From NCBI GenBank assembly GCA_028826165.1, contig JAPDFW010000130.1, positions 1 to 64,000 of the forward strand: a stretch of DNA of 64,000 bases. Direction: 5' to 3'. Numbering within the stretch: position 1 is the stretch's first letter; every line of letters begins with the position of its first letter. This DNA comes from Anaeramoeba ignava BMAN. Lineage: Eukaryota; Protista; Anaeramoebae. Shown here piece by piece: positions 11,543-60,760 of the stretch. Position numbers and translations under genes: made by a program. The notes beneath the pieces were generated by a model. The model searched no databases. It worked only from the letters and a program-made list of their open reading frames with translations, and had not been told where the DNA came from.

Positions 11543-14500
11543 ATGGATGAAAGAGTTGAAACTTTTGCAAGTTTAACAAACACAAGTAAAACATTTGCAA
11601 CACAATATTTAAGTCGATTTGAATGGAATATAGAAGTAAAAAATTAAAATTCATTTATAAAATTAAAATTAAAATTAAAATTAAAATTAAAATTCATTTT
11701 GAAAATTAAAATTAAAATTAAAATTAAAATTCATTTTGAAATTAAAATTAAAATTAAAATTAAAATTAAAATTAAAATTAAAATTAAAATTCATTTAAAA
11801 TTAAAATTAAAATTAAAATTCATTTATAAAATTAAAATTCATTTTGAAAATTAAAATTAAAACTAAATTAAAATTAAAATTAAAATTAAAAATTAAAATT
11901 AAAATTAAAAATTAAAATTAAAATTAAAATTGAAATTAAAATTAAAATTAAAATTAAAATTAAAATTAAAATTCATTTTGAAAATTAAAATTAAAATTAA
12001 AAATTCATTTTGAAAATTAAAATTAAAATTAAAATTCATTTTGAAAATTAAAATTAAAATTAAAATTCATTTTGAAAATTAAAATTAAAATTAAAATTAA
12101 AATTAAAATTAAAATCAAAATTAAAATTAAAATTAGAATTAAAATTAAAATTAAAATTAAAATTAAAATTAAAATTAAAATTAAAATTAAAATTAAAATT
12201 CAAAATTAAAATTAAAATTAAAATTAAAATTAAAATTAAAATTAAAATTAAAATTTATATTAAAATTAAAATTAAAATTAAAATTAAAATTGAAAATTAA
12301 AATTCATTTTGAAAATTAAAATTCATTTTGAAAATTAAGTTCGCAGTAGAAGCTTTTTATCAAAATCAAGGAATAGAAACAATTGACGATTCACAAGAAA
12401 AAAAAAAAACTGAAACATTTCAAAAACAATCCATTATATGAATTAATTATGAAGAACGATATTGAAGCAATGAAGAAGAAAATAACAAGCAACGCTGAAG
12501 AGATACTAGAATATCAAGAAGAAGATGGGTCAAATCTTCTTCATTACGCAACAGAAAACTCACAATTAGATATGATTCGGTTACTTATTGAAAGTGGAAT
12601 AAAAATTGATTCACAAAATAAAAATGGGAAATCATCATTGCACATTGCTGTTCGAGGAAATATGTATGATGTTGTTGAACAGTTTATTGCATATAAAGCA
12701 GATATTAATATCCAAAACAAGGATGGATTCACCCCTTTGTTTATTGCTGTTCAATTTAATTTTTATAAAATTGCTGAATTGTTACTTAAAAATAATGCCA
12801 ATTTTCAAATTTTCACTCAAAAATTGGCCCCAATTCATCTTGCTGCAGCAAATAATAACCCTTCGTTAGTTGAATTGTTGATTCATTATGGTTCTGATCC
12901 TAATTTAATTTCTCAAGAAGGAAAAAATGCTTATCATTATACTCAATCTATTTTTGTTCAGAAAATATTACGTTCTAAAATGAATTCTAATAATTTTCCA
13001 AATTATTATAAAATGGATAATATTGAGATTATAAATGAAGAAATAAGTTTTTTAAATTCTTTAATTGAAACACAGACTTACAATTTTAATGAGACACAAA
13101 TTGAAGTAAAATTAAATTAAAATTCATTTTGAAAATTAAATTAAAATTAAAATTAAATTAAATTTAAAATTAAAATTAAATTAAAATTCTTTTGAAAATT
13201 CTTTTGAAAATTCATTTTGAAAATTCTTTTGAAAATTCAATAGAAATTCTTCCATTTAGCTTTAACAAACAGATACCCACAATTAATTCAAAAAATTCTC
13301 AAAATACTTGATTTACACAATTACAAAGACAAATACGATCAATCCTTATTACATTATACAGTTATTGAAAACAACAATTTTCTTTTAAAAATGATTCTAA
13401 ACAACAACGGAAACCCAAATATCATTGGGGCAAAGAAGCAAACCCCCCTTCACGTGGCAGCAGAACAAGGGAACCTTCCTGCAGTGATCATGCTTTTAAA
13501 ACAAGGAGCAAATTACAATGCAAAAGATTACAAAAATAGAGACCCTTTAAATTGCTCCAAATCACCGGCAACTCATTTTACTTTGTATTCAATCAATAAG
13601 ACATACGAAATTCGCAGAAGACAACAATCAATCAAGGAAATTCTTCACATTTTCATCTCGGAAATGCAGCCGTTTATTGACTCTTGGATCGATATCAACG
13701 ATCTCCAAATTGACAGGCAAATTGGAAAAGGAATTAATGGAATAAGTTATCTTGGAAAATGGAATTCAAAGGATGTTGTTATCAAAAATTTATCATGACC
13801 CAATCGAGGGTATGGTTGATGCAGAACAATTAGCGTTTAATCAACAAATAGAAAAAGTTGTGAAAATCAAAGGAAAAAAAACGCAAACAAACAAATCCAA
13901 TTTAAATGAAACGCAAGAAAAAATATTTACAGGAAAACGTTTTTTTGGATCGTTTTATGGATTTTTCATTCATTTCTCGGAAAACGATAAAATGCAATTT
14001 GCAACTGTGAGGAAATTATTATCCGCAAGGAAGTCTTCGAGATTTGATCGAAAAATACCAGTCGGAAAAAAGGATCTTTGATTGGAAAACAATAATCAAT
14101 ATTCTTCAGACTGTTTCACAAGCAACTGAACTTTTTCACTCAGAAATTGGAACACTTGTTTTATCGATCAAGACACAGAACATCATGCTCACAACGAAGC
14201 CAAGCAAATATAAGATTGTGGATATTTTTTCAAAACCGCAAGAACCATATATCAAACTTTTTCACGGATCTTTGCACAGTTTTTTGGGAAATGGATCCGA
14301 TCTTTATTCTTTTGGAATACTCACTTGGGAATTGGTTACTTTTCAACTCCCTTTTTCTAATGTAAATGATCCCAATGGCTCAAAATATACTATCGATCAA
14401 ATGTCGAAGATTTATCAAAACTATATCTATAAATATCCCTATATTTTCGGTTCTGTTATAACCTCCATTATCTCACAATCTGTTAATGCTGGTGCTGTTT

Positions 14501-14934
14501 CTGGAATGTCAGTTATTCTCCAAATTTTAGCTTATGGAGAAAGTCAACTTATGTCTTCTCAAAATACAAATCAAAATCAAAATGAAAATGAAAATGAAAA
14601 ATTCGAAAATTTAAAACTTCCTGAAATTATCCAAAAAAATGACAGTCCGTTGATTTTTATTACAAAAGAATTGATCCACAAACTTGAAAGGCTCAAAAAT
14701 ATTCCAGATTGTTTAAAACAAGTTGAATTTGTTCTGAAGGAATTTTTCTTTAAAAGTTTCTTTTGTTTTTCAACAAAAATTGAAAGAGAGGAAGATCATA
14801 TTTTTTTATCTGTTCAAACTATTTTAGAAACATTAGGTTGGTCTCCTTTACTTTCCAGATTTGATGAATCAATAAATGAAATTGAAGTTGAAAATTTAAT
14901 TGAAGTTTTTCAAAGTTTGATTGAAGGAGATTAA
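11543..14934 (+). CDS. UBA-like + ankyrin repeats + TKL-type pseudokinase
   Basis: Exons 11543-11635, 12340-13105 and 13244-14934. N-terminus MDERVETFASLTNTSKTFATQYLSRFEWNIE|FAVEAFY is UBA-like. Several GxTPLH-type ankyrin repeats follow. Kinase motifs: IGKGINGISYLGKW, VVIK, YYPQGSL, SDLYSFGILTWEL. Three apparent 1-nt indels (about 12410, 13790, 14015) lie in A-runs. Confidence 0.75.
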
Positions 14935-15923: not shown

Positions 15924-18900
15924 TCAATTCAATTCATTTGAATCTTTTTTCGGTAGAAAAGATCGTAAAATAGTTTCAAAAGATGAATCTTCGTGTAATT
16001 GATAAAAATCAGCAGCATTATCAAGTTCTTCCAAAACATCCAATGGAGTATCTGGATCAATTGAATCAAAATACATCCATTGAACCAGAATTTGAATAGC
16101 CTTTAAACTTTTTCCAGAATAATCCTGAACAGTAGAAGAAGGATCATTAACAGACTCAAACATATGAAGATACAAATCAGATCTTGCTGATAAAAGAAAC
16201 TTATGAATTTTGACAATTTGATCATCCACTTTTATTCCAAAATCTTTGCTTTCTTCATCCAAATAAAGCTGTTTTAATCCTAATAATAAACTATTTCTTG
16301 CTGATTTTTCACTTAAATCAATCCCATATTTTTCACATGTTTTGATGCTTTCTTCATTTTTGGGTTGTTCTCCTGAATAAACCCACTTTATAATCTCAAC
16401 AACTATATTATCATCTTCTATATCTTGAATTCCTTCAATAAATTTATCCATTTTTTCCTTATTCCCAATTCTTGCCAAAAGGAAGTGTTTATGACAAGGA
16501 AATGATTCATGTTTTGTCATGATTTTGAAATCGGTTAAAAATTTACTTGAATAAAAAGTTTCAAGTTCTTTGCAAATATTTCTAAAACTTAAAATGATTT
16601 TTTTTGTGTCTTCGTTTGCATTATTTGTTAGATCTTGTGAATTATAAAGAATATCAATAGGAGCTCCAGCAAGAATGATATCAATTAATCTATCTTTTTT
16701 TGACAAACGAGTTGCATTCCAAACAATTGGAACACACTAAATCAAAATATTTCAAAATATTCAAAATAATTAAAATATTTTAAATAATTAAAATAATTAA
16801 AATAATTAAAATAATTCAAATAATTAAAATAATTAAAATAATTAAAATAATTCAAATAATTAAAATAATTTAAATAATTCAAATAATTAAAATAATTTAA
16901 ATAATTAAAATAATTAAAATATTCAAAATAATTAAAATATTCAAAATAATCAAAATAATTAAAATAATTTAAATATTCCAAAATAATTAAAATAATTAAA
17001 ATATTCAAAAATAATTAAAATAATTAAAATAATCAAAATAATTAAAATAATCAAAATATTTCAAAATAATCAAAATAATCAAAATATTCAAAATAATTAA
17101 AATAATTCAAAATAATTAAAAATAATCAAAATAATTAAAATAATTAAAATATTCAAAAATAATTCAAAATAATTAAAATATTCAAAATATTTAAAATAAT
17201 TCAAAATATTTCAAATATTTAAAATAATTAAAATAATTAAAATATTTCAAAATAATTCAAAATAATTAAAATAATTAAAATAATTAAAATAATTAAAATA
17301 TTCAAAATAATTAAAATATTTCCAAAATAATTAAAATAATTAAAATAATTAAAATAATTAAAATAATTAAAAATAATTAAAATAATTCAAAATAATTAAA
17401 ATATTTAAAATAATTCAAAATATTCAAAATAATTAAAATAATTCAAAATAATTAAAATAATTAAAATAATTAAAATAATTAAAATAATTAAAATAATTCA
17501 AAATAATTAAAATATTTAAAATAATTCAAAATATTCAAAATAATTAAAATAATTCAAAATATTTCAAATAATTAAAATAATACTTACATCGCTTAACCAA
17601 AAATCAGCATGTTTCAATAATAATCTAAAAGAATCTCGAGGTGTTTTTTCTGAATACTGTTTTAATAGTATATGTAATGGTGTTTGATTCTACAAAAAAA
17701 TTTGTTTTGTTAATTTTCATTCAATTTAATTTAATTTTCTTTTAATTTACATCCTTTTTTTTTGGAATACAATTTTAATATCAATTTAAAAAAATTCGTG
17801 TTTGAATTCATCTTCTTTAAATTACTAACTGTTTAAATTCTATCTTAATAATCTTTTTTTCAATTATTTCTTTTTTTCAATTTTTTTACATTCTTTTTTT
17901 TTATTAAATTAATTTGATAAATTTCATTATAAAAAATTAAAATTACTAAATCATTCACTGAGAAACCCTTATCTAATAAAAATTCAATTTTGGTTTTTGA
18001 TGTTTCTCCTTCACAAGCTCTATGAAGAATTGTACTTCCCTTATTATTTAATCAAAATGATTATTATTATCACTATAAATATAAATCTTAAAAAAAAAAA
18101 GATTTTGTTTATTGATTTACTTTTCTAAAAATTTAATTTAATTTAAAAGAAAAAAAAAGAAATTATTTTTCCAATAAATTTCTTCTTTTTACTGAATCAA
18201 CTTGTTTCAAATTAACATTTGAAGAAATCAACTTTTTAATAATTGTTAAATCTTCACTTGAATTCATTGCATAATCTATTGCAACTTTTTTCTAATAATA
18301 AATCTTATTATTAAAGAAACTTTTTTTTTTTATTGAAAAGAAAATTTTTTCAAATCAAATTTACATGCTAAATTGAAAATATTTTATTCATTCTCTTTTC
18401 TAATATCTTAAAAAAGAATAAGAAATAAAACAAACATCCTAAATCCAAAAACAAATATATATAAATTAAATAATAAATTTTCATTCAAATTAAAGTTCCC
18501 TTTTTTTTACATTCTTTTGAATTTTTTTCATTAAAATTTATTCAAAAAAAAAACTCAATTTTAATTTAAAATACATGCTATAAAATATTATTTTGAAATT
18601 ATATTAATTTTCTTTTTGGATAAATAATTAAATGAATAAAATCAATACAAACTAAAAAAATAATAATAATAACAATAATATTTTTGGTTTTTTAGCATTA
18701 ATTAATTAATTAATTAATTCCAAAAAAAAATTTACAAGCTAAAAATAATTTAAATTAAATTGTCTTCCAAACAAAACAAAATATTTATATTTAAATTAAA
18801 TTCTACTTGCTAATAAAATGGAAAAAAATTTGATTTTGATATTTTTTTGATCAAAATAAAAGGAAAAACTTTTTCATTTTTGAAATCAAACATGCTAAAT

Positions 18901-19999
18901 TTTTTTTTTAGAAAAAGAATCAAAATTTTAGTTTTTTTACTTTATTTAATAAGAAAAAAAAAACATAAAATATTTACAATCTAAAAATAAAATTACTCCT
19001 CAATAAAAAATATTTTATCAAATAAAATATAAATTTATTTAAATTACATGCTAATTATTTATCCAAAAAGTAAAATCAAATGAAATCAAATGAATTTAAA
19101 TTTGAATTTAAAATTAAAATAATAATTTACAGTTGGGATATTTGGATCAGCTCCATTATCAAGTAAAAATTCTACAAGCGGAATATCTCCTTTTTGAATA
19201 GCAAAAATTAAAGGTGTAAAATTCTAAATTTTTTATAATATTTTTAATATTTTTAATATTTTTAATAATAAAACATTTACATCCTTTAAAAAGAAAAAAA
19301 AAAAGGGAATTATTTATAAAAATTAATGAAAAGGAAATATTTATCATTTACATACTAAATAATTTTAAAGTAATTTGTTTGTATTAATTTTTTTAAAAGA
19401 AGATTTTTATCTTTTCAAATTTACAATCTAAAACAAAAAGAAGAAAAAATAATTAAAAAATTTAATAAGAATAAAATTGTAATGATTTTTTACAGTCTAT
19501 AAAAACAATAAATTAAATTTAAATTTAATTCAAATTAGCTTTAAATTATCTTTATTACTCTCTTTATTAAAAGAAATATATAAAATTTAAATATTTTATA
19601 TTGAAAAATAATATTATTTACAGTCTAAAATTTTTTATAAAAATAAAAATAAAAATTAATTATAATTTTAATATAATTTTACTATTGGTAAATTTAAATC
19701 AGCTCCAATAGAAAAAAGATGTTTAATAATTTCTAAATCAATGTTTTCTTGTTTGCAAGCAAAAGCTAAAGGAGTAAATTTCTATTATAATTATAAAATT
19801 ATATAATTTAAATAAAATAATTTTAAATAAAAAGCAAATTTTTTTACATTCTAAATTTAAAAATTAAAATTTTAAAAATAATTCTAAATTAAATTGATTT
19901 TTTTTTTACATAAAGAATATTGATATTATCTTTATTAGCTTCTTCTTTAACTGATTTTAAATCGTTTTTTGTTATTGCTTCAAATAATTTTTCACTCAT
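15924..19999 (-). CDS. Ankyrin-repeat + tandem BTB/POZ protein with arrays of single-codon microexons
   Basis: Phase-0 exons: 19999-19910 (MSEKLFEAITKNDLKSVKEEANKDNINILY), 19781-19683 (KFTPLAFACKQENIDLEIIKHLFSIGADLNLPI), 19223-19131 (NFTPLIFAIQKGDIPLVEFLLDNGADPNIPT), 18291-18193 (KKVAIDYAMNSSEDLTIIKKLISSNVNLKQVDS), 18039-17947 (GSTILHRACEGETSKTKIEFLLDKGFSVNDL), 17689-17588 (NQTPLHILLKQYSEKTPRDSFRLLLKHADFWLSD) and 16736-15924. The last exon has two BTB domains (TDFKI..FPCHKHFLLAR; SKDFGI..IHKFLLSARS). All exons have AG/GT borders. Confidence 0.88.
17751..17892 (-). other. Array of 3 single-codon microexons: N,L,D
   Basis: AG|NNN|GT at 17890-92 AAT, 17826-28 TTA and 17751-53 GAT. Introns are 54-72 nt. 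Including all three gives VNDL-NLD-NQTPLH, the canonical ankyrin spacing. Confidence 0.8.
18121..18124 (-). other. Microexon AAA(A), probably a single Lys codon with a homopolymer over-call
   Basis: ttttAG|AAAA|GTaaat. One Lys here gives QVDS-K-GSTILH, the ankyrin consensus spacing. The assembly has other homopolymer indels. Confidence 0.55.
18365..19050 (-). other. Array of 10 single-codon microexons: H,I,H,Q,L,F,H,N,D,H
   Basis: AG|NNN|GT at 19048-50 CAT, 18978-80 ATT, 18892-94 CAT, 18807-09 CAA, 18736-38 CTT, 18650-52 TTT, 18575-77 CAT, 18511-13 AAT, 18436-38 GAT and 18365-67 CAT. Introns are 61-83 nt. Confidence 0.8.
19281..19624 (-). other. Array of 6 single-codon microexons: T,R,T,I,Y,D
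   Basis: AG|NNN|GT at 19622-24 ACT, 19559-61 AGA, 19494-96 ACT, 19425-27 ATT, 19352-54 TAT and 19281-83 GAT. Introns are 57-70 nt. Confidence 0.8.
19848..19850 (-). other. Single-codon microexon AAT (Asn) between exon 1 and the first full ankyrin exon
   Basis: tttAG|AAT|GTaaa, with flanking introns of 59 and 66 nt. Confidence 0.75.
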
Positions 20000-25121: not shown

Positions 25122-26994
25122 ATGTCAAACAAAAGAGATTTTATTATAATTGGCGGTGGACCAGGTGGAATAGTCACAGCTCATGTAATAAAATTCATGA
25201 CACAAATGATGGGCAAACAATTATCAGTTTTGATAATCAAAGACGAAGAAAAGCTTGTTAATCGATGCGCAATTCCTTATGGAATGGGAGAAAAAATTCC
25301 AGCTGATGATTTCCTTATTCCTTTAGAAATGTTCACTTCAGCTGCTGAACTTAAAATTGATACTGTTACTAAAATTCTTCCTGAAGAATCTAAAGTTGTT
25401 ACTAAATCTGGTGAAGAATTTGAATATACAAACCTCTTAATTGCTACTGGTGCTTCTCCTTTTGTTCCTCCTATTGATTTGATTGATTCAAAAAATATTT
25501 TGAAAGTTCGTGATTATGAAAACTTTGAAAAAATGAGAGAATTGACAAAAAATGCTGAAAAGAAGAAGGTGGTGGTTATTGGTGGTGGTTATATTGGAAT
25601 TGAAATGGCTTGTGGATATGCTGATATTGGATTTGATGTTACTGTTGTTGAAATGGTAATTTTGCATTAAAAACATAAATATAAACAATATAAATGAATA
25701 TAAACAAATATTAAATATTGAATATTGAATATTGAATTAAATATTGAATTGAATATTGAATTAAATATTGAATATTAAATATTAAATATTGAATATTGAA
25801 TTGAATAATGAATTGAATTAAATATTGAATATTAAATATTAAATATTAAATATTGAATATTAAATATTAAAATGAATTAAATATTGAATAATGAATTGAA
25901 TATTGAATTAAATATTGAATATTGAATTAAATATTGAATTGAATATTGAATATTAAAATGAATTGAATATTAAATTGAATATTAAATTGAATATTGAATT
26001 GAATATTGAATTGAATTGAATAATAAATATTGAAATGAATATTGAATATTGAATATTGAATTAAATATTGAATTGAATATTAAATTGAATTGAATATTGA
26101 ATTGAATAATAAATTGAATATTGAATTGAATATTAAAATATCTTTCTTTATTTTATTATTTAGTTATCTCATGTTATGCAAATAACAACTGATAGTGAAT
26201 TCACAGAAATTATTGAAAAAGAATTAACAGATCACAAAATTAATCTGAAATTAGGCCAAAAATTAACAGGATTTGTTAAATCAGAAAAAAATCCAGATTA
26301 TGTTTCTCACGTAATTTTAGATTCAGGAGAAAAAATTGAAGCAGATATTGTTGTTCTTTCAATAGGAGTAAGACCAAATACAAAACTTGCAGCAGATTGT
26401 GGAATTGAAGTGTCAAAATTTGGAATTGTTACTAATGAGCATTTACAAACAAAATATCCAAATATTTACGCAGTAGGAGATGCTACTCAAAAGAAATCAC
26501 TTATAACACAAAAACCAACTGTTTGTCAATTTGGAACAACAGCAATTTTCATGGGCAAAGTAGTAGCAAATAATATTCTTGGAATAAAGAAGGAATGCAA
26601 AGGAGTAATCAATAGTTATTGCACCAAAATATTTGATTGGGGAATTGGAGGAGCTGGAGTATCAGAAGAACAAGCAAAAGCTGAAGGATTTGATTATGTT
26701 GTTGGATTTTCCAAAGTGGAAGATAAATATCCAATGTTGAATCCATCACCTCTTATCACCAAATTAGTTTTCAATAAAAAAGATATGAAATTAATTGGAG
26801 GTTGTTCAATGAAAAAAGGAGATAGTGCTGCTCATCTTTCTGATTGGTTTAGTTTGGGCATGCAAAAAGGTATTACTCTCGAAGATGTCATTGATTTCCA
26901 ATACTCCACTCATCCAGAACTCAATTCAAAACCTAGCTTCAACATGTATGTTGCAGCTGCTCAAGATGCATGGATGAAATTACAAAAGAAATAA
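25122..26994 (+). CDS. FAD-dependent NADH oxidase / CoA-disulfide reductase family, paralogue 1
   Basis: Exons 25122-25655 and 26164-26994. Motifs: GGGPGG FAD fold, single redox Cys (NRCAIPY), ATGASP, GGGYIGIE, IYAVGD, and C-terminal YSTHPEL. Confidence 0.9.
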
Positions 26995-28026: not shown

Positions 28027-29661
28027 ATGTCAAATAAACGAGATTTAATTATAATTGGCGGTGGACCAGGAGGAGTTACATGTGCAAATGTAGTAAAAAA
28101 TTGGGGTAAATCTATGGGAAAAGAATTATCAATAATGATGATTAAAGAAGAAGAAAGATTAGTTAATAGATGTTCAATGCCTTATGGAATGGATTACAAA
28201 AAGCCTTATGAAGATTTCCTTATTGCTCAATCACACTTTACAAACGCAGCTGAACTTAAAATTGATACTGTTACTAAAATTCTTCCTGAAGAATCTCAAA
28301 GTTGTTACTAAATCTGGTGAAGAATTTGAATATACAAATCTTGTAATTGCTACTGGTGCTTCTCCTTTTGTTCCTCCTATTGATTTGATTGATTCAAAAA
28401 ATATTTTAACTATTCGAAATTTTCAAGATCTTGCAAAAGCAAGAGATTTAGCAGAACATGCTGAAAAGAAAAAAGTTGCTGTTATTGGAGCTGGTTATAT
28501 TGGAGTTGAAGTGGCTGCAAGTTTTATAAATCTTGGATTTGATGTTACACTTGTTGAAATGGTAAATATTTGATTTTTAATTTAATATTTAATATTTAAT
28601 ATTTAATATTTAATATTTAATATTTAATATTTAATATTTAATATTTAATTTAATATTTGATTTAATATTTAATATTTAATATTTAATATTTAATATTTAA
28701 TATTTAATATTTAATATTTAATTTAATATTTAATATTTATATTTAATTTAATATTTAATTTAATATTTTAATATTTAATATTTAATATTTTAATATTTAT
28801 ATTTGATATTGATTTTATTTTATTATTTAGTTGCCTCATGCTATGCAATTAACAACTGATAGTGAATTCATTGAAATTATTGAAAAAGAATTAATAGATA
28901 ACAAAATTAATCTAAAATTAGGCCAAAAATTAACAGGATTTGTTAAATCAGAAAAAAATCCAGAAAATGTTTCTCATATAATTTTAGATTCAGAAGAAAA
29001 AATTGAAGTTGATTTTGTTGTTCTTTCAATAGGAGTAAGACCAAATACAAAACTTGCAGCAGATTGTGGAATTGAAGTTACAAGACAAGGAATTGTTACT
29101 AATAATAATTTACAAACAAAATATCCAAATATTTACGCATTAGGAGATGCTACTCAAAAAAAATCACTTATAACACAAAAACCAATTGTTTCACAATTTG
29201 CAACATCAGCAGTTTTCATGGCCAAAGTAGTAGCAATGAATGTTCTTGGAACGAAAAAAGAATGCAAAGGAGTAATCAATAGTTATTGCACTAAAATATT
29301 TAGTTGGGGAATTGGAGGAGCTGGACTTACAGAAGAACAAGCAAAAGCTGAAGGATTTGATTATGTTGTTGGATTTTCAAAAATTGATGATAAATATCCA
29401 ATGTTGAATCCATCACCTGTTACTACTAAAATGATTTTCAATAAAAAAGATATGAAATTAATTGGAGGATGTGCAATGAAAAAAGGAACAAGTGCTGCTC
29501 ATCTTTCTGATTGGTTTAGTTTAAGTATCCAAAATGGAATGACTATTGAAAGTATTATGGATTTCCAATACTCTACTCATCCAGAACTCAATGCAAGACC
29601 AAGTCAAAATATGTATGTTGCAGCTGCTCAAAATGCATTGATGAAATTACAAAAGAAATAA
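28027..29661 (+). CDS. FAD-dependent NADH oxidase / CoA-disulfide reductase family, paralogue 2 (1-nt insertion near 28297)
   Basis: Exons 28027-28561 and 28831-29661, with the same intron position as paralogue 1. Redox motif NRCSMPY. Extra C in gaatctCaaagtt versus gaatctaaagtt in paralogue 1. Confidence 0.85.
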
Positions 29662-35872: not shown

Positions 35873-37274
35873 TCATTTTCTTCTAGCAAAATAGGATTCA
35901 AGACCTGTTGGATTTATATGTTGAAGAGGACAATTTTTATCTTTACATTTACCATAAATCTGATAATCAACACAAACTAAAATAATAAATATAAAATATT
36001 AAATATAAAATAATAAATATTAAATATAAAATATTAAAATAATAAATATTATTAACCTTTTCTTTTGGTTTTTTTTCTTGTATCAAGAAAAAAAATCTTT
36101 TCAAGAAATTCAGGATTTATATCAGCTTTTCCAAATTCTTTTATTAAAATTTTTTCTTTATCTTTCCTTAAAGGATTTGGATGTTGATAAGGACACAAAG
36201 TAGAATAACAATTACCCAAATAAGGGCAAATAACTATATCTTTTGGATGAAGATTAAAATTAGGATTTTGAATATGTTCCGTTTTAGAACACATTTGATG
36301 ATTTAATAAAAAAGAGCATATCTGTTGTTGTTGTTGTGGTTGTTGTTGTTGTTGTTCATCACTTTCAAAATTTTCAAAACTTTCAAAACTGTCAAAACTG
36401 TCAAAACTGTCAACATTTTCAATATTTTCAACTTCTTGGATATCAATATATTTTTCATAGTTGTCAATTTTGACATTACATTTGGGACACTTGTCCTCAT
36501 TTTCCATAGAAGCTTCTACAAAGCAATTGCGGCAAAACGCTCTTTCACAATGTTCACATCTCACGAGATCGTGGATGGTTCTGCGGCACACTGGGCATCT
36601 TCTTCTTCTATGGGATCTATTTGATCTTCTTGAATTTCTATTGTGTTTTTTTTGTTCTTCATCTGAAAAAAATTGTGTTTCATTTTGTTCATTAAAGGAT
36701 TTTTCGAAATCATTAATTATTTCTGCATCCAAAACAATAGATTCAGAATTTTTATTTTGTGAATCAATTTGAATATTTTCTTGAATATTTTCATCTTGAA
36801 TTTTTTCATCTTGAATATTTTCATCTTGAATATTTTCATCTTGAATATTTTCATCTTGAATATTTTCATCTTCAATTTTTTCATCTTGAATATTTTGATT
36901 AATTTTTTGATTATTTTTTTGATTATTATTTTGATTATTTTTTTGATTATTATTTTGATTATTTTCTTTTTCTTTTTCTTCTAAAAGTTTTAATTCATAA
37001 TAAAGTTGTTCTAATTGATTATTTCTTTTTGGATGTCGGATTTTTGTTTTGCAAATTGGACAACGATCTCCTCTTTCAAGCCATTGAGAAAGGCATCCTT
37101 GACAGAAACTATGTCCGTTTGGACACATTGTTATTGGAGGTTCCATTGACATTTTACTTTAAAATTATTATAAAAAATTTTTCCTTTTTAATTTTGTAAA
37201 TTTTCTTTCTTTTTATTTTTCATTTGTTTTTTTTACCAGATTGGGCATTCAAAACTTTGTAGATTTTCAATCAT
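35873..37274 (-). CDS. RING-finger (C3HC4) + second Cys-rich finger + CCCH zinc-finger protein
   Basis: Exons 37274-37237, 37156-36057 and 35976-35873. RING: CPIC...CPNGHSFCQGC...CPIC. Second finger: CPVC...CEHC...CRNC...CPKC. CCCH: CPYLGNCYSTLCPYQH and CVDYQIYGKCKDKNCPLQH. Confidence 0.8.
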
Positions 37275-39803: not shown

Positions 39804-42800
39804 TTAATCTCCATATTCAATCAAAATCTCATCAACACCAACATTTTGTCCGGTTTTGACATTGATTTTCTTGATAGTTGTGTCTTTCTCGCATTTAAGA
39901 AGATTTTGCATTTTCATAGCTTCAATGATGCAAAGTTCTTCACCAGCATTGACTTTATCGCCGGGTTTTTTGTCAGTAATTGAGAAGATCATACCTGGCA
40001 TGGGGGCAACAAGGAATTTAGAAGTGTCAAGAACAATTGGTTCTGGCATGAAGGGGGCAAGTTCAGCTTGTCTTTTTGTTCTGACAAAAACATCGAATTT
40101 TGTTCCGAGATGCCGGATTACAAATCCTTCTGGTTTTGGTTTGATCATCTGCAAAACAACCTTTTTGTTGTTGATTGTGGCTTTGAAAATATGGTCATCG
40201 ACAATCCAGTCAATGTCTTTGACGATGTTTTTGTTGCCGTTGGCTGTGATGATGTAGCCGTCTTTTGTCTTTTCAACGTCACAATTGTATTTTTCTTCGA
40301 GGAATTGAACAACAAATTCAGATTGAGGATCGTGTTTGAATCCTTGTAGTTTTCCGGAGATTGTGTGAGCTTTTTCTGCGCGAAGAAGATCCATAATAAT
40401 TGCGCCAGCAGCCAATTGTTCTTTTTCGTCTGGCTTTAAAACAACGCCTTTGAAACCATCTGGCCACATTTCTGGGATGTATTTTGTGGTGATTTTGCCT
40501 TCAACATAGCGCGGTTGATCGAGAATAGCGCGCAAAAATGGGATATTGTGATTGACACCTTCGATCACATAAGAATCAAGTGCTTCTTTCATTCTTTGGA
40601 TTGACTCGTTTCTTGTTTTGCCATAAGTGATCAACTTCGAGATCAATGGATCATAAAACATCGAAATTTCAGCTCCATCAATAAAGCCAGTGTCAATTCT
40701 GATCGACTTGTCTTCCGGAATTTCGGGTTCTTTGTATTTGACAAGTGTTCCGATCGAGGGCAAGAAGCCTCTTTCAGGATCTTCGGCATAAACACGACAT
40801 TCAGTTGCCCATCCATTAATGCCAATGTCGGATTGTTTTACTGACAATTTTTCTCCGGCAGCAACTCTGATCATGTGTTCGACAAGATCAAGTCCTGTCG
40901 TGTATTCAGTCACTGGATGCTCAACTTGCAATCGAGTGTTCATTTCCAAGAAGTAGAAGTTCTTATTTGGATCGACAATGAACTCGCATGTTCCGGCAGA
41001 ATTGTATTTGACAGCATGACATAACATGACAGCTTGTTCTCCCATTTTTTTTCGTGTTGCCGGATCCAAGAAAATTGACGGCGCTTCTTCAATGACTTTT
41101 TGGTTTCTTCGCTGAATTGAGCATTCACGTTCGTTGACATAGACAGCATTGCCGTAATTGTCAGCAAGCACTTGGATCTCAATATGACGTGGGTTGTCAA
41201 TGAATTTCTCAATGAAAATTCGATCGTCATCAAAAGCAGATTTTGCTTCTTCTTTAGAAAGTCGGATACCTTCTTTTGCTTCTTCATCATTCCAAGCAAC
41301 TCTCATTCCTTTTCCTCCACCGCCTCCGGCAGCTTTGATCATAATTGGATATCCAATTTGATGTGCGATTTTAAGAACTTCTTCTGGTGTGAAAACTTCT
41401 CCAACGTATCCTGGGATGACATTGACACCTGCTGCTTTTGCTATTTTTTTACTTGCAATTTTGCATCCCATTTGGTCAATTGCATCTGCGTGTGGTCCAA
41501 TGAATACCATTCCGTTGTCTGCTACTGCTTTGGAAAATTCTCGCTTCTCACTTAGAAATCCATATCCTGGATGAATTGCTTGTGCTCCTGTTTTCTTTGC
41601 TGCGTTGATGATGTTTTCAATAATGAGATAACTTTGGTTTGATGGTGCTGGTCCCTTTTATAATATAAAATAAAATAATTTAATTTAATTTAATTTAAAT
41701 TAATTTAAATTAAAATCTTATTTTATTTTATTTTATTATTTTATTTACCACTCGAACAACTTCATCAGCTTTAGCAACATGAAGTGAACTTAAATCTGCA
41801 TCAGAATAAACTCCAACAGTTTTGATTCCCATTTTTTTGGCAGTTCGCATAATTCTGCATGCGATTTCACCTCTAAATAAATTTTAATTATTAATTTAAT
41901 TATTAATTTAATTATTAATTTTATTATTAATTTAATTATTAATTTAATTATTAATTTAATTATTAATTTTATTATTAATTTTATTATTAATTTTATTATT
42001 AATTTTATTATTAATTTTATTATTAATTTTATTATTAATTTTATTATTAATTTTATTTATTAATTTTATTATTAAATTTATTATTAATTTTATTATTAAT
42101 TTTATTAATTAATTTATTATTAATTTAATTATTAATTTTATTATTAATTTAATTATTAATTTTATTATTAATTTAATTATTAATTTTATTATTAATTTAA
42201 TTATTAATTTTATTATTAATTTAATTATTAATTTTATTATTAATTTAATTATTAATTTTATTATTAATTTAATTATTAATTTTATTATTAATTTAATTAT
42301 TAATTTTATTATTAATTTTATTATTATTTTTATTATTATTTTTATTATTAAATTTATTATTAAATTTATTATTAAATTTATTATTAATTTTATTATTATT
42401 TTTATTATTATTTTTATTATTGATTTAATTATTAATTTATTATTAATTTTATTATTAATTAATTATTGATTTTAATTATTAATTAATTATTGATTTTTAA
42501 TTATTAATTAATTATTGATTTTAATTATTAATTTTTATTATTAATTTTATTATTAATTTTATTATTAATTTTATTTATTAATTTATTTATTAATTTTATT
42601 ATTAATTTTATTTATTAATTTTATTATTATTTTTATTATTAATTTTAATTATTAATTTTAATTATTAATTTAATTATTAATTTTATTATTAAATTTATTA
42701 TTAATTTTATTATTAATTTTAATTATTAATTTTATTATTAAATTAATTATTAAATTTATTATTAATTTTATTATTAAATTTATTATGATTTTAATTATTA

Positions 42801-48701: not shown

Positions 48702-51700
48702 TTAATCCCATTTTTTTTTCTTTCTCAAAATATTAAATCCATTTGCTCCAGAAAAACCTATTTGACACAAATCACAAACGGAACAAATTTGACGATCAAA
48801 TTGTGGAAAATAATTCGATCCACAAAAAGGACATTTTCGAGAAGAATTTGAATTATAAATGGGACGCAAAGAATAACAGCAAATAACAAAAGAATTATTT
48901 GTGTTGTAATCAAGTTTATATTTATTAGATTTATTCTTTTCACACAAAGAGATAATTTTTTTCACCTTTTGGATAAATTGAATATCTGTATTGAATTCTA
49001 ATAAACGCTTTGCAAATACAAGCGCATCCAAATAATTCTGCATTTTTGCGCATAAAAACATTGCAGAACGAAGAGCAAGAACAAGATGCTCTGGCTGAAT
49101 CTTGCAATGTGTAAAATAGCAAATCATTTCTAAACTTCGAGTTGGATCTATTTGTGATTTTTCTTTTTTCTCAATTTCTAACTTGAATGCAATTATATAT
49201 TCTCGACACATTTTGATAATTTTCTTGATCTTTTTAATATCAGAAATTTCATCAACAACAACTAAAGGAATTTGGTGTAAAATTTCTTGGAAAATCTTCA
49301 AACTTTGTGAAAATTTTCCTTGAGTTGTGAGACTTAAAGCTTGATTTAATAAGTTTTCCAAAGATTGCTTATTAATAACTTGCTTAGAAAAATGATTTCC
49401 ATTCAAGATGTTTGATTCAAATTGTGGAATGATAATTGGATTTATATTTGGAAATCCTTGCAAAGTATTGTTTGCACCTAAAAAACTTGATAAAAAATAT
49501 TTTTTCATTGGTGAAAAATTTATTACACCAAATTGAGTATTAAGAATCTTCATTGATTCGTTGAATAATCCAAGTGTTGCTAATTCTCCAGGAGTTTCTG
49601 TGTTCATAATGAGGTTTTCATTTGGATATTCTTTATGTAATGGAGGAATATAAATTAATTTTTCATTTTCATCAATATCAATAATATTTTCAATAATATT
49701 TTCATTATCATTTTCATCAATATTAAAAATATTTTCATCAATTTCAATATCGTTATAATTTTCATTTTCAATTTCAATATCTTTTTCTATCATTGATTCA
49801 AAACTCAATAAAGGCCAATTTTTTGGTGAACTAATTACAAAAGGTGGTTTTAAAAGAAATTTTTGAGTTGGAAAAAAATTTGGAATTTTTTTGTTTTTCA
49901 AACGAAATAATTCCTCAATTTCCTTCGCCTTTTCTTCAATACCATAAGTTTTTGCAGTTAAATAAGCATAAATAAGTTGATTTGATGATATTAACAATTG
50001 TATTCTTTGTTCAATATTTCCTGTCATTAAAGACACTTGAAATTGAAGAGAAGTTTCTTTGAAAAGTTGAGAAGAATTGGATTCATTTTGAGTTTTCTGC
50101 ATTTGGCCTGTAATAGCGCTAAGAAATAAAAACTTTCTTCCATCTCCTTGTCTAAAATAACTACGTTCAGCAATTTCAATATTTCCTTGTTCAATCGCAT
50201 TTTTTGATAATATTTTCCATAATTCTTTTTGATTTATTATTTCCGCAAATTTTTCCGCCATAAAAAGATCTCCAGAATCAATCGCAAATGTAAATCTAAG
50301 CTGTGGAATTTCTGTGAGATGAAGCGCAATTTCAGAGAGATGATGCTGTTGAAGAAACATCACAATTGCTTTTCCTGGGAATTTTGAATTTTTCACAATT
50401 TCCAAAATTTTTTGCTTGTTTTTCTCAAGAGCCGATGCTTTTAGTTCAAAATCTGTTTCGTTGATCTTTACAAAATTGATTTCTGAATTGTGATCCAAAT
50501 AGTAAATTTTTGAATTGGAAAAAAAGCAAAGATAAACAGGTTTGGTAATTGTTTGGATGATTGCGGTATCTCCATTGAGTAAACCGTATTTCAAATGATC
50601 ATAAGTTGAATATAGAATAACATGAGAAGAAGTCCATATCATGCTTTTGATTCTGAAAGTTTCAATAATAATTGCTTTTTTCTGAAATTTTTTGTTATAA
50701 ATGAAAATTGAGTTTTTGGAAACTAACGCAAAATATAAGTTGTCTTTCGACCAGAAAACTTGTCTAATATTCTTTGCATCGATTAACCCAGTCGTGCATT
50801 TTGTTTGAAGATCATATCGCAAGATTTGGGAGGGTGTTGCTAATAGAAAAGATCCTGTATCGGCTGGGAAAAGAGCGCAAGATGAAGGATCACAATCCTG
50901 AATATTTTTATTTCCTGAATTGACAAGAATATCTGTTATTGATATTGCGAGTGTTTCTTGTGTGTCAACATTCCTGAGAAAGATGTTATCGTTGTGGATT
51001 GAAATGAACTTATTTCGAGAAACCCAAACACTAGATCGACCAATTTGTAAATTTGACAGTTTTTTTTGTAAACAAGAAAATAATAAGAATTTTTGTTTGG
51101 ATTGAATCAAAAGCATTTCTGATGAAGGATTATATTGCAAACTGTGAATATTTGAGATATCCAATTTCTTTGAAATGCGAACCATTCGTTGTTCTATGTC
51201 TGTTTTAAAATTGAATCTTAATATTCTGGCATCACGATAAAAAAATAGATTTTCAGAAGAAAAACAAAAGGGAGATTTTTGACTCTTTAATTTAAACACA
51301 ACAAGACCACGATCATTTCCAGTTGCGAATATATTCTGTGTTGGATGAGCATCCAGACACCAGTGCTTGTTGTTTTTTGTATTGAAAACAACTGAAGAAT
51401 TTTTATTTTCAATGTTCCAAACACGAAGAGAAAAGTCTTCAGAATTTGACAATATCAGATCCTCTTTGGGATGGAACACAACAGACGAGACACAGGCGTT
51501 ATGACCGGAGAAAGTAGCAGCAACCCATGCCTTGTACTCAGATAATCTCCACAGTTTTATTTTATTGTCATCGGAACATGAGACAACAAGCGGGAAAGAA
51601 GGATGAAAACTCGCCCAATTAACCCCCATTTCGTGATCTTCAAGAATAAATTTCGGTTCTACATCAGATGGCCCAAACATGTCTGTGGGAAGTCCCATTA

Positions 51701-52277
51701 AAGAAGGTGTCATTTCCATAGAAAAATTGTCAGGATCATCCACACTTATATCGTTATTTCGGGAAAATTTTTGTTTTAATCCAGTGATGTCCCAGATGAT
51801 AATGGTCCCATCCAAGGAGGCAGAAAGAAGCGTATTCATTCTCGGATGGAATTCAACATGTGTGACGATATTGTTATGTCGAACGAGTATGGCAATACAC
51901 GATCTGTTTTGGAAGTTCCATATTCTCACTGACATATCATCAGAAGAGGACACAACCCAAGGCTGCTCGCTGTGGAAGTGAACACTCCGGATAATATCTG
52001 TATGACCCTTTAGGCTGAATTGTAATTTCTTGTTCTGGTAGTTCCAAATTTTTACTAATTTGTCATCTCCACCTGTCACAAATAGTGGCAATGTTTTATG
52101 GAAATTAACTCCTCTAACACTCCCTTTTGTTGCTTGAAATTCTTCATATTTATATTTGTGAATGTAATCCCATATCTCAATTTTACCATTACTTAATCCA
52201 CAAAGAATCCAAGATCGAGTTGGATGAAATGATAATGTTTTTACTGTTTTTGATTTTGTTTTAAATTTGATTTTCAT
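48702..52277 (-). CDS. COPA: Coatomer subunit alpha (alpha-COP), intronless and divergent
   Basis: 1191-aa ORF. N-terminal WD40 repeats (FHPTRSWIL, FVTGGDD, GVNWASFHP). C-terminal region includes YFTHCKIQPEH..LALRSAM and the Cys cluster CPFCG...CSVC. Confidence 0.93.
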   Translation of the reverse strand: MKIKFKTKSKTVKTLSFHPTRSWILCGLSNGKIEIWDYIHKYKYEEFQATKGSVRGVNFHKTLPLFVTGGDDKLVKIWNYQNKKLQFSLKGHTDIIRSVHFHSEQPWVVSSSDDMSVRIWNFQNRSCIAILVRHNNIVTHVEFHPRMNTLLSASLDGTIIIWDITGLKQKFSRNNDISVDDPDNFSMEMTPSLMGLPTDMFGPSDVEPKFILEDHEMGVNWASFHPSFPLVVSCSDDNKIKLWRLSEYKAWVAATFSGHNACVSSVVFHPKEDLILSNSEDFSLRVWNIENKNSSVVFNTKNNKHWCLDAHPTQNIFATGNDRGLVVFKLKSQKSPFCFSSENLFFYRDARILRFNFKTDIEQRMVRISKKLDISNIHSLQYNPSSEMLLIQSKQKFLLFSCLQKKLSNLQIGRSSVWVSRNKFISIHNDNIFLRNVDTQETLAISITDILVNSGNKNIQDCDPSSCALFPADTGSFLLATPSQILRYDLQTKCTTGLIDAKNIRQVFWSKDNLYFALVSKNSIFIYNKKFQKKAIIIETFRIKSMIWTSSHVILYSTYDHLKYGLLNGDTAIIQTITKPVYLCFFSNSKIYYLDHNSEINFVKINETDFELKASALEKNKQKILEIVKNSKFPGKAIVMFLQQHHLSEIALHLTEIPQLRFTFAIDSGDLFMAEKFAEIINQKELWKILSKNAIEQGNIEIAERSYFRQGDGRKFLFLSAITGQMQKTQNESNSSQLFKETSLQFQVSLMTGNIEQRIQLLISSNQLIYAYLTAKTYGIEEKAKEIEELFRLKNKKIPNFFPTQKFLLKPPFVISSPKNWPLLSFESMIEKDIEIENENYNDIEIDENIFNIDENDNENIIENIIDIDENEKLIYIPPLHKEYPNENLIMNTETPGELATLGLFNESMKILNTQFGVINFSPMKKYFLSSFLGANNTLQGFPNINPIIIPQFESNILNGNHFSKQVINKQSLENLLNQALSLTTQGKFSQSLKIFQEILHQIPLVVVDEISDIKKIKKIIKMCREYIIAFKLEIEKKEKSQIDPTRSLEMICYFTHCKIQPEHLVLALRSAMFLCAKMQNYLDALVFAKRLLEFNTDIQFIQKVKKIISLCEKNKSNKYKLDYNTNNSFVICCYSLRPIYNSNSSRKCPFCGSNYFPQFDRQICSVCDLCQIGFSGANGFNILRKKKKWD

Positions 52278-55930: not shown

Positions 55931-56103
55931 CGAATTTTTTGATTAGATAAAAATTAATTAAATAAATAAAAAAATTGCTTAAAGTAAGAACCAAAACAAA
56001 GAAAAAAAGCAAAAAAAAAATAAAAAAAAATCTTAATTAAATTTTTTGCTTTTTTCATTTTTTCATTTTTTTTCAATTTTTGAAAAACAAAAAACGAATA
56101 AAA

Positions 56104-59100
56104 ATGGGACAAAAACCAACAAAAAAAAAACCAGAAAACGAACAAAAAACAGAAGAAAAGAAAGAAGAAAAGAAAGATGAAAAGAAAGATGAAAAGAAAG
56201 ATGAAAAGAAAGATGAAAAAAAAGATAAGGAAATGACCCCAATGGAAACTGTATATTTTGGATCAACAAGATATTCACTTCTCATTTCAACAGACAAAAA
56301 AACTTACAAACCAGGAGAAACAGTTTATATTCGAGGAATTTTATTAGAAGCATTTACACACAAACCAGTTGAAAATTTTGCCGGAAACGGAAATCCATAT
56401 ATGAAGATATTAAGTCCAAAAGGGGATACAGTATTAGAAAGCACAATCTCATATCAATCAGACAGTGTTTATTCCTTCTCATGGGCAATACCAGAAGATT
56501 CAGTTGGAGGAGAATACAAAATGCAAATTTATCACAAATCTGGCAAAGGAATTCCAATTAACGAAAGGGGATTTACAATTAGAGTTTTTCGACCTCCCAG
56601 ATTAAAATCCGATTTGGAGTTTATTCAAAAGGCTTATGGCGCAGGGGATGAAGTCAAAGCGAGTTTATCTGTTGAGAGAGCTGAGGGAGGGTTTCCTGAA
56701 GGAGCTAATGTTACTGCTATTGCTAGACTGGATAATGAGGAAGTTTATAGAGGTGATTATGTTCTTGATAAAAATGGAAAGTGTATCATTTCTTTTAAAT
56801 TACCTGATGAAATTAAAGAAGGCATTGGTAATCTTAACTGCTCAATTACTGATGGTGGTGTTAATGAAAATGCCTCTAAAACTCTTCCTGTTGTTCTTAA
56901 AAAAATGGATGTTCAAGTTTTTCCTGAAGGTGGTGAGTTAGTTTATGGTTTAAAATGTGGTGTTTATTTTGAAGCTGTTACTCCTTCTGGAAGTCCTGCT
57001 GATTTTGAAGGAATTTTAGTTTGTTCTAAAGGAGATAAATTGAATAAAGATATTAAAAGTAAATATTCAAAAAATATTAAATATAAAATAAAAATAAAAA
57101 TATTAAATAAATATTTATAAAATAAAAATAGTGAAAACTAATCATGAAGGAAGAGGAAGATTCGAATTCACTCCTCAAAAGGAAATCAATTACGAAATCA
57201 AAATCATAAAACCAGCTGGTGTTACTGTTCCTGTTCAACTTCCAGAAATTAAATCAGAAGGAGTCTCAATAATCTCAAACAAAAAATCATTCCATTTCAA
57301 AGAAAAAATCTCAATCACAATTTCATCAACACGAAAAGAAGAATATATAGTTGGAGTTTACAAAAGAGAAAAAGAAATATCAACAAAAGAAATCAAGTTC
57401 AAAAAAGAACGAGAAAGTCAAAAAATAGAACTTGAAACAAAAGAAAACGATGGAATTCTTAGAATCACTGTTTGGAAGAAAACAGATTTAACACCAATGG
57501 CTGAAAGAATAGTATTTGTTCATCCAGTTGATGAAATCATATTTGAAATTGAACCTGATAAAAAAACATATTGTCCAGGAGACACAGTTTCATTGACAAT
57601 TAAATCAAAAACCAAATCAGGAAAACCTATACAAGCCATTTGTGGAGTTACTGTTACTGATGATAGTGTGTTTAAAATGACTGAGAAAAGAGAAAGACCT
57701 CCAAGATTACCAGCAATGTATTTCCTTGAAAACGAAGTTGAACATCTTGAAGATTGTCAAATTTATCTTTCGCCAGATCAAGATAAAGATAAAGAAAAAG
57801 AAAAAGATAATCAAGAAAAAGAAAAATTGGAAAAATTCACTGAATTGGATCTTTTATTAGGAACTCAAGGTTGGAGAAGATTTTTAAAAATTGATGAAAA
57901 ATTATTGGATGATCCAGATAAAGAAAAATTGGAAAAATTATTTGTTGTTTATTGTGACCCAAATATATTATCAAGAGAAATAAGAAAAGTCAAAAGAAAA
58001 GATGAAATTCAACAAATCAAAACAAATGTTTTGAATCAAGAAATATTCAAAGAAGAAAAAGTTTTTGAAAGAGATGCCATTTTAGAAAATCAAATTCAAA
58101 TGAATTTCAATGAAATTGACGAAATAAAAAGAAAAACAAGTATTGGCGATGAAATGGAACAACCACAACTATTGATAATGGAAATGGAAAAAGCGCCACC
58201 ACCAATGCTTGAAATGAAACAAAAACAACAACTACCACCACCAATGCCTCAAATGCAACAACAACAGCAACTACAACCACCAATGCCTCAAAAGCAAATG
58301 CAAGCGCTTGCACCTCCAAAACCAATGCCTGCAATGGCTCCAGTACCACCATTTGTTCAAAAAAAAATTATGATGGAAGAAATGGAAAAACCACAAATGA
58401 AAAGAATGAAAATGAAACCAGTGATGATGAGAAGAAGGGAAATGGAAAGGGAAATGGAAATAGAAGAAGATGAATATTGGTCAGATGAAGATGATGAAAT
58501 CTGGGATGATGAAGTATTAGCACCTACTCCAACTATTCCTTATTTCAGAGAATTTATTCATAGAAGAAAACCAGATAGACAACCTGGTGAAAGAAATGAT
58601 TTTGTTGATACTCTTTTTTATATTTCTTCAATCAGAACAGAAAAAACCAAAGACATCTTCGAACAAAAGATCGAATTTGATTTGAATGATTCTGTTTCTT
58701 CATTCAGAGTTTTCATTGATGGATTCAATTCAGAAGGTTTACTTGGATTTTCTGAGAGTTTTGTTGTTGATTCAAAAGAACCATTTTATTTAGAACCAAA
58801 ATTCCCACTTGAAGTTTCATTTGGAGATAAAATTAATCTTCCAGTAGCGCTTGTTAATTCTTTGCCAAATGATATGGATATCACATTGAAAACAGAAATA
58901 CTCAGTAAATCATTAGCAATCGAAGGAGATTCAGAATGGAAAGGACAACTTAAATCAGAAGAAAGAACAAAAAAATTTTTCAACTTGACAGTTAATCAAT
59001 CACTTGAAAAAGCAAAACTCAAAATCAACGGAAACGACACGAAAAATCCTGCAATAAAGGATCAAGTTACAAGAGAAATTGAAGTCAAACCTGCTGGCTT

Positions 59101-60760
59101 TCCTTTGTCTCTAGATGTAAGTGGAATGCTAGAACCAGAAGGAACAGTAACTCAAAAAATGACAATTCCTGATGAAATTATTGAAGGAAGTATCACAACC
59201 TATTGCAGTGTTTTCCCATCGCCAATGGGAACTTTAACAGAATCACTCAAATCATTTATTCGCGAACCTTGCGGTTGTTTCGAACAGACTTCAATGACTG
59301 TGTATCCTTTAACAATGGCACAACAATATTTCAAAACACATACTGGAGTTGATCCAAATTTCGTCACCGAATCAAATGAGAAACTTGAGAGAGGATACAA
59401 ACGATTGATTGGCTACGAATGCAAAAAGGGAGGTTATGAATGGTTTGGAGAAGATCCAGGCCACGAAGCTTTAACCGCAATGGGGATCATGGAATTCACT
59501 GATTTGTCACAAGTTTTCCCAGTTGATCAAGAAATGCTCAAAAGAACAACAAGTTGGGTTTTGACAAGAATCAACAAATCAAAAGGGGTTTTCGAAAGGA
59601 ATTCACTTGCTCTTGATTATTTCGGTGGAGCACCTCCTCACACAACTGATGCTTATATCACTTGGGCTTTATCCGAATCCAAAATTGAATATAAAGAACT
59701 CAAACCTGTTGTCGATAATTTAATCAAACAATCACAGAAAGAATTCAAAGAGGATTCTTATTTCCTTTCTTTGCTTTCCTTGATTTTGTTCAATTTCGGT
59801 TTCAAAGATCAATCACTTGAATTATGCAAAAAATTGACAGCACTTCAAAACAAGGAATCAAAAGATATCAAAGAAAAAGGCCATTTAACAAAAGCTAAAA
59901 CATCAATCACTCGCTCATCAGGTTTCAATTTGAACATGGAAACAACATCATTGAGCGTTGTTTCTTGGCTCAATTTCCCCGATCAATTCGCAGAAAATAT
60001 CGAAGATGCAATGCAATTCATCACTTCAAATTGCAAAGGCGGAAATTTCGGTTCAACTCAATCAACTGTTCTTGCCTTAAAAGCAATCATGAAATACGAT
60101 ATATATTCCGCTAAAGCAACAAAAGAAGGATCAATTGAGTTGATTGTTAATGATGAATCAGTTGAGGCTTTGGGATTTGTTCCAGACCAAAAGGGAGCAA
60201 TGATTTTCCCTGATTTCTCTTCGTTTTTACAGAAAGGAAAAGAAAATGTGATGGAATTGAAAATGATTGAAGGATCCAAAATGCCTTTTGTGATTCAACT
60301 CTCACTTACAACTCCAAAACCAGATTCAAATCCAAATTGCAAAGTGAATCTTTCAACAAAATTGATTTCAACAAATAAAAAGGAATCAAAGACTAACACA
60401 ATCAAACAAGGCGAAGCAACAGAGATTGAAGTGATTGTTACTAACAAAACAGACGAAGGCATCCCAATGACTGTTGCTATTATTGGGCTACCTGGTGGTT
60501 TGGAAGTCAGATACGACCAATTAAAAGAACTTGTCAAAAAAGGAATTATCGCTTCTTTTGAAATGATTGGAGCAAGAGAACTTGTTTTTTATTGGAGAGC
60601 TATGAAACCTAAAGAAGTTATCAAGTTTAGTGTTGATGTTATTGCTGCTGTTCCTGGAATTTATACTGGTCCTTCTTCAAGAGTCTATCTTTATTACACA
60701 AATGATGAGAAGATTTGGATTGATCCACTTAAGATTGAAATTCTTCCTGATGAAAAATGA
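56104..60760 (+). CDS. Alpha-2-macroglobulin / thioester-containing protein
   Basis: Exons 56104-57058 and 57132-60760. MG-domain motifs STDKKTYKPGETVYIR and FPEGG. Also DLLLGTQGWRRF, a P/M/Q-rich bait-like region, the thioester motif REPCGCFEQ, GGYEWFG and STQSTVLALKA. Confidence 0.9.

Follow-up and report, generated by a model that had tools for sequence, protein, structure and literature searches.

The stretch of DNA analysed here, called the window below, comprises 64,000 nucleotides (nt) of contig JAPDFW010000130.1 from Anaeramoeba ignava BMAN. Its minus strand carries, at 19999-15924, a gene for ankyrin repeats followed by a BTB domain, and the stretches between the ankyrin exons are filled by chains of very short introns separated by units of a single codon. 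In paralogues of this gene, single-codon exons are spliced into the mRNA, and where an array has two units the mRNA contains both of them, in genomic order; for the window gene itself we infer from its sequence that the units are coding microexons too. An earlier interpretation made from the letters of the window (the sequence-only reading) had described these units and proposed that they are combined by alternative splicing. The gene is organised as follows.

19910-19999, minus strand: exon 1, N-terminal ankyrin cap repeat of 30 amino acids (aa), identical to residues 1-30 of the NCBI-type model P0063.
19848-19850, minus strand: array 1, one 3-nt exon (N).
19683-19781, minus strand: exon 2, one ankyrin repeat of 33 aa.
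19281-19624, minus strand: array 2, six 3-nt exons (T, R, T, I, Y, D) starting at 19624, 19561, 19496, 19427, 19354 and 19283, with introns of 57-70 nt.
19131-19223, minus strand: exon 3, one ankyrin repeat of 31 aa.
18365-19050, minus strand: array 3, ten 3-nt exons (H, I, H, Q, L, F, H, N, D, H) starting at 19050, 18980, 18894, 18809, 18738, 18651, 18577, 18513, 18438 and 18367, with introns of 61-84 nt.
18193-18291, minus strand: exon 4, one ankyrin repeat of 33 aa.
18121-18124, minus strand: array 4, a single unit of 4 nt, a run of A, bounded by AG and GT, with flanking introns of 68 and 81 nt.
17947-18039, minus strand: exon 5, one ankyrin repeat of 31 aa.
17751-17892, minus strand: array 5, three 3-nt exons (N, L, D) starting at 17892, 17828 and 17753; all three together give a repeat of 34 aa.
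17588-17689, minus strand: exon 6, last ankyrin repeat, degenerate, 34 aa.
16737-17587, minus strand: simple-repeat intron of 851 nt, without 3-nt units.
15924-16736, minus strand: exon 7, 813 nt, 270 aa and a stop codon, BTB at the C-terminus, 100% match to residues 193-462 of P0063.

The six ankyrin exons (90, 99, 93, 99, 93 and 102 nt) are all in phase 0, and the ankyrin motif is present in exons 2-6, as judged by a local profile seeded partly with the same exons. The BTB domain claimed for the gene is confirmed by a Pfam match in the last exon (PF00651, E 2.6e-12, 47.3 bits against a cut-off of 20.5); a degenerate BTB probably lies ahead of it in exon 7, a tandem arrangement suggested by a paralogue model. 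The extent first given for the gene, 17588-19999, covers the ankyrin part; the gene continues past the 851-nt intron to the BTB exon at 16736-15924. Unit positions and array sizes (one, six, ten, one of 4 nt, and three) agree with the sequence-only reading; the inter-unit introns are all GT-AG, with 3-18% guanine plus cytosine (GC), and their length range, reported as 54-83 nt, measures 54-84 nt. Twenty of the 21 units are 3 nt long and in phase 0 as described, and no unit is a stop codon; the remaining one, at 18124-18121, has 4 nt, and its inclusion in the assembled form would cause a frameshift. It is likely a homopolymer assembly error, because one residue at array 4 gives normal repeat spacing. 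The units make up 64 of the 1453 coding nt of the gene (~4%).

Such units might not be exons at all: they could arise by chance, serve as signals for recursive splicing or be artefacts of the assembly, with the large exons joined directly. Indeed, the NCBI protein models compared, P0063 for the window gene included, join the large exons directly and skip every unit. AG-NNN-GT occurs 20 times in the inter-exon stretches of the gene, against 1.25 +/- 1.08 expected and a maximum of 6 in 1000 dinucleotide shuffles, while spacers of 0-2 and 4-8 nt between AG and GT stay at chance level in the same stretches. A scan of the whole window found no comparable chain elsewhere, in agreement with the claim that its other introns lack the pattern; the one other intron-like match (5554) falls inside an open reading frame. 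The other ankyrin gene, at 11543-14934 on the plus strand, has ordinary introns and no 3-nt units, as had been stated. It is an ankyrin-kinase gene in which one intron is a simple repeat of ~700 nt and the kinase part is split into several frames as assembled.

Transcripts of paralogues bear out the proposal that the units are real exons. The EukProt transcriptome proteins P0151 and P0266 match their NCBI counterparts except that two residues are inserted at each ankyrin junction, i.e. at 11 of 11 junctions, four in P0151 and seven in P0266. At four of these the inserted residues could be mapped to the genome as separate 3-nt exons, using patterns derived from the proteins, each with a unique match and none in the control: the pair Y and M at G000:C93:695191-695471, and the pairs E and F, K and S, and D and A on C56. 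The two units of the D and A pair are separated by an intron of ~680 nt, without a dense array; this 841-nt junction of P0266 had been considered as a ten-unit array yielding two residues, a view that was rejected in favour of two units and one long intron. The remaining four junctions of the P0266 gene measure ~215-221 nt, the size of two-unit arrays. The paralogue units thus fall within the usual definition of coding microexons (at most 27-30 nt, flanked by AG and GT, present in mRNA). Exact look-ups for the genes with long arrays gave no match, and assembled transcripts represent the dominant form only, so that minor skipping would be hidden.

Codon statistics across genes, based on loci L031-L050, lead to the same conclusion. 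Phase-0 candidate units contain one stop codon in 257, compared with 9.5% in the flanking intron, and 89% of them use the commonest codon for their amino acid. For phase-0 units the GC content at the three positions is 0.39/0.23/0.04, for phase-1 units 0.23/0.08/0.51; the low-GC position therefore moves to the middle base in phase 1, as the reading frame predicts. When all units are included, repeats of 33-35 aa result at 30 of 43 ankyrin junctions, and other family members, many of them apparently intronless, have repeats of mostly 33-36 aa. Arrays of three units often encode K-D-G or K-N-G ahead of x-T-P-L, as in the ankyrin consensus, and short arrays complete a normal repeat only with all units used. 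Given also that units are conserved in two strains of Anaeramoeba flamelloides, the view that the units are not exons is refuted for the paralogues and retains almost no credence in general.

The arrays are not confined to the window gene. The whole A. ignava assembly (42,843,398 bases in 147 contigs) was searched for chains of AG-NNN-GT, a scan which the sequence-only reading had put forward as a check: the three-unit pattern gave 301 matches, while the 4-nt-spacer pattern gave 9, nearly all in simple repeats. A reversed-pattern control was high (189) and did not discriminate, so that the 4-nt spacers and shuffles were used as controls instead. The first 100 of the 301 matches correspond to roughly 30 places. 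Among the loci read, chains are present in ankyrin-BTB and kinase-ankyrin genes; RING-kinase-ankyrin genes (L037, L041) have arrays of 3-10 units, 6-nt units included, and the kinase exon of L037 has a frameshift as assembled. In BTB-BACK-TLDc genes (L032:4330-4890, L033, L034 and L035; G000:C1 ~942 kb and 1.054-1.080 Mb) the arrays follow a GPxFG motif in a loop of the TLDc domain and count from 7 to ~35 units, while intronless paralogues have four residues at the same place. These arrays are in phase 1, with every codon split over two adjoining units; an initial description of them as hydrophobic phase-0 codons was discarded. Finally, two BTB coiled-coil genes, L031:3800-7630 (G000:C1 ~409-413 kb) and L048 (C57 ~594-598 kb), have C-terminal tails that seemingly consist entirely of tandem intron-plus-codon units, at least 30 of them, with near-identical introns, differing codons and some decayed copies. 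Another candidate, L047, was set aside as probably a simple-repeat false positive.

Ankyrin-BTB genes of A. flamelloides (L051, L052, L054, L055) contain, at the corresponding junctions, candidate units of 3 nt and in some cases 6 nt; their spacing of ~115 nt matches the modal intron length of that species; in one gene the candidate units are identical between two strains. Long arrays were not seen in the few A. flamelloides genes read. The single-codon exon design appears to be old within Anaeramoeba, since it is common to two species whose proteins share 37% identity on average.

The claim that the units fill hairpin positions between repeats is upheld both by the lengths of the completed repeats and by a structure predicted for the transcript-derived paralogue P0151. 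In this AlphaFold model (predicted local distance difference test score, pLDDT, 93) the inserted residues lie in loops between helix pairs, and the model superposes on designed ankyrin repeat proteins (DARPins) at 1.3-2 A over ~155 residues. The inserted residues occupy what we take to be the target-binding positions that are randomised in DARPins; the positions of the DARPin binding surface are described in general terms in PMC8683736. The paralogues match Pfam Ank families, and several cullin genes are present in the genome. Ankyrin repeats followed by BTB suggest that the product of the window gene may act as a cullin-3 substrate adaptor; a sequence search gave no relative of solved structure. 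That the protein might recognise symbionts or pathogens is a speculative idea.

On balance we lean towards a reading in which all units are included in the mRNA and the loops diversify in the DNA, through duplication and loss of units and codon change. Each intron of 54-84 nt, near the modal length of 76 nt in A. ignava (PMC11550330), would be recognised singly, and the main mRNA of the window gene would carry all units, perhaps with some skipping as a minor by-product. With all units included, hairpins would be normal at arrays 4 and 5, whereas the loop would be longer by ~4 residues at array 2 and by ~8 at array 3. The intron-plus-codon unit would act as a frame-safe module whose duplication, loss or alteration in the DNA affects a single amino acid at each step, and the consequence would be fast evolution of length and sequence in the binding loops of a large family of probable cullin adaptors. 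In favour of full inclusion, GTAA donors are equally frequent in long and short arrays (60 of 71 in both); long aromatic loops occur as contiguous sequence in relatives (P0039, with ~10 additional residues, and an intronless gene in L050); and the D and A pair is included even across its ~680-nt middle intron. In short-intron protists, intron definition is favoured and alternative splicing consists mostly of intron retention, not of cassette exons (PMC2397502).

The units of L031, L048 and L032 are tandem copies, with flanks 79-95% identical and triplets 37-51% identical, and decayed copies are found in L031; for the young arrays the figures are 87-95% in the flanks and 37-40% in the triplets. 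In the window gene, the flanks of the units have decayed to background identity (0.43-0.44), which marks its arrays as old. A comparison of two close TLDc paralogues gives 5 differing bases out of 48 in the triplets (10.4%) and 23 out of 1336 in the introns (1.7%; p=0.002). All three changed units change the amino acid; in two of the three, two bases are exchanged, in opposite directions, a pattern that suggests conversion between units. Diversification at the DNA level is thus supported in one family, and we infer it for the others. The same arrays could instead reflect non-adaptive intron proliferation by tandem duplication at tolerant loops, where codons are kept only as coding sequence and diversity is not selected. 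The low-complexity tails with decayed units in L031 and L048, in a genome that is intron-rich and full of simple repeats, fit such a process; conversely, the same two hairpin positions are reused across repeats and also in the distant A. flamelloides, triplets outpace introns in the TLDc comparison, and long arrays are rich in aromatic residues, which leaves the proliferation hypothesis a small chance.

Several observations weigh against the favoured reading. The transcript evidence is confined to arrays of two units, and dominant-form assemblies would conceal minor skipping; TLDc arrays of 7 to ~35 units, where intronless paralogues have four residues, would make a very large insertion if all were used. 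In a second paralogue group triplets do not diverge faster (4-8% for triplets vs 4-12%). Moreover, none of 92 phase-1 units starts with AA or GA, against ~25% expected, as if stop-forming joins had been purged; the 92 comprise only 14 distinct triplets, which are not independent.

An alternative is combinatorial splicing, in which any in-order subset of codons of a long array could be used, while short arrays stay constitutive, and each locus would make a library of loop variants. We regard this as possible, yet doubtful. The units are 3 nt and hence frame-neutral, and skipping one of them needs an intron of just ~140 nt, well within the range of the genome (median 102 nt). In ankyrin genes, long arrays hold 4-12 residues more than the normal loop, and in TLDc up to ~30 more; long arrays are aromatic-rich (23/74 vs 9/72, p=0.009), and the missing AA and GA starts would agree with skipping. 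However, splice sites are no weaker in long arrays than in short ones, long loops also occur free of introns, and two phase-1 units starting with AG are stop-free only because the preceding unit ends in G, so that skipping it would create TAG. Wherever transcripts exist, all units are included: the available evidence, 11 junctions all fitting two-unit arrays, has every unit in genomic order and does not bear out the combinatorial choice put forward in the sequence-only reading, whose figure of 15 x 45 = 675 combinations presupposes a choose-two rule.

Such a rule would amount to a Dscam-like counting mechanism, with a fixed number of units, about two, chosen from each long array so as to restore normal repeat length. 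Arrays of two units are the most frequent (18 of 43 junctions), and arrays 2 and 3 of the window gene would need that number for normal spacing. At 54-84 nt, the introns have a length at which splicing is normal, and neighbouring units therefore do not exclude each other sterically; the flanks of the window units are at background identity and thus show no evident selector-like motif; and the 841-nt junction that gains two residues holds no array. We consider counting very improbable.

The window also holds other genes. On the plus strand are found an alpha-2-macroglobulin-like gene in two open reading frames with MG2, A2M and TED domains (56080-60760) and two neighbouring copies of a pyridine nucleotide-disulphide oxidoreductase gene (25122-26994 and 28027-29661). 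The minus strand has ordinary genes for a propionyl-CoA carboxylase alpha-like protein (39804-41510), coatomer alpha (48702-52277), an Mtr4-like helicase (60889-62193) and a RING-finger protein (36052-37152).

Even if all units are included, the arrays represent an extreme gene design: each specificity residue of a large adaptor family has an exon of its own, the chains reach ~35 units, and the design is conserved in two distant species. The arrays offer a natural test of how a spliceosome deals with 3-nt exons that follow one another directly, and a way for loops to add or drop residues singly while the frame is kept. At the binding surface, the public protein models compared are without the unit residues, and intron counts and lengths for the genome are probably affected by the missed units. 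Should the combinatorial view hold, for which the case is tentative, dozens of ankyrin-BTB, kinase-ankyrin and BTB-TLDc loci would each make a binding-loop library at single-amino-acid resolution; a splicing-based receptor repertoire of this type, in a single-celled eukaryote and common to Anaeramoeba, would be a categorically new kind of diversification for a protist. The text and supplements of PMC11550330 contain no mention of microexons that we could find, and no paper from 2023 on was found that treats Anaeramoeba, splicing and exons together; in accordance with the claim of novelty, the literature search gave no description of such a system.

The arrays can be compared with several known systems. 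In Drosophila Dscam1, one exon per array is included through RNA pairing. Like the arrays described here, it has coding units in tandem that look like alternatives and belong to a recognition protein; by contrast, the two-unit arrays of the A. ignava paralogues are included whole, and no selector motif is seen in the flanks of the window units. Human ABTB1/BPOZ is an ankyrin-BTB cullin-3 adaptor with the same order of ankyrin stack and BTB, and we know of no single-codon exon structure in genes of this type. DARPins (PMC8683736) and LoopDARPins (named in the reference list of PMC5777970) likewise carry variable residues at the hairpin; DARPins are engineered. The ROCO genes of brown algae (PMC11378527) share with the window gene one repeat per same-phase exon, and form a large family of candidate recognition proteins whose binding positions diversify; they shuffle or skip whole leucine-rich repeats of 72 nt on an LRR-ROC-COR architecture, while Anaeramoeba has ankyrin-BTB proteins with single loop residues as exons. 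Plant and animal microexons, 1-nt exons included (PMC8831610), are also real ultra-short exons flanked by GT-AG introns and commonly misannotated; the known cases are single or occasionally adjacent, in contrast to chains of 2 to ~35 across gene families. Finally, the micro-exon genes (MEGs) of Schistosoma mansoni (PMC4015677, PMC10526429) have exons of 3-81 bp separated by long introns, which form up to 75% of the coding sequence of small secreted proteins and whose skipping has been demonstrated. Both systems have runs of very short symmetric exons (20 of 21 units in the window gene are 3 nt and in phase 0) that can be skipped in frame and are missed by ordinary annotation. The window gene departs from MEGs in that the N-terminus of its product is a charged ankyrin cap, with no secretion signal seen by inspection, without a predictor; its units form a minor part of the coding sequence, and the Anaeramoeba units are nearly all one codon and separated by minimal introns, and their places within a folded intracellular domain are fixed.

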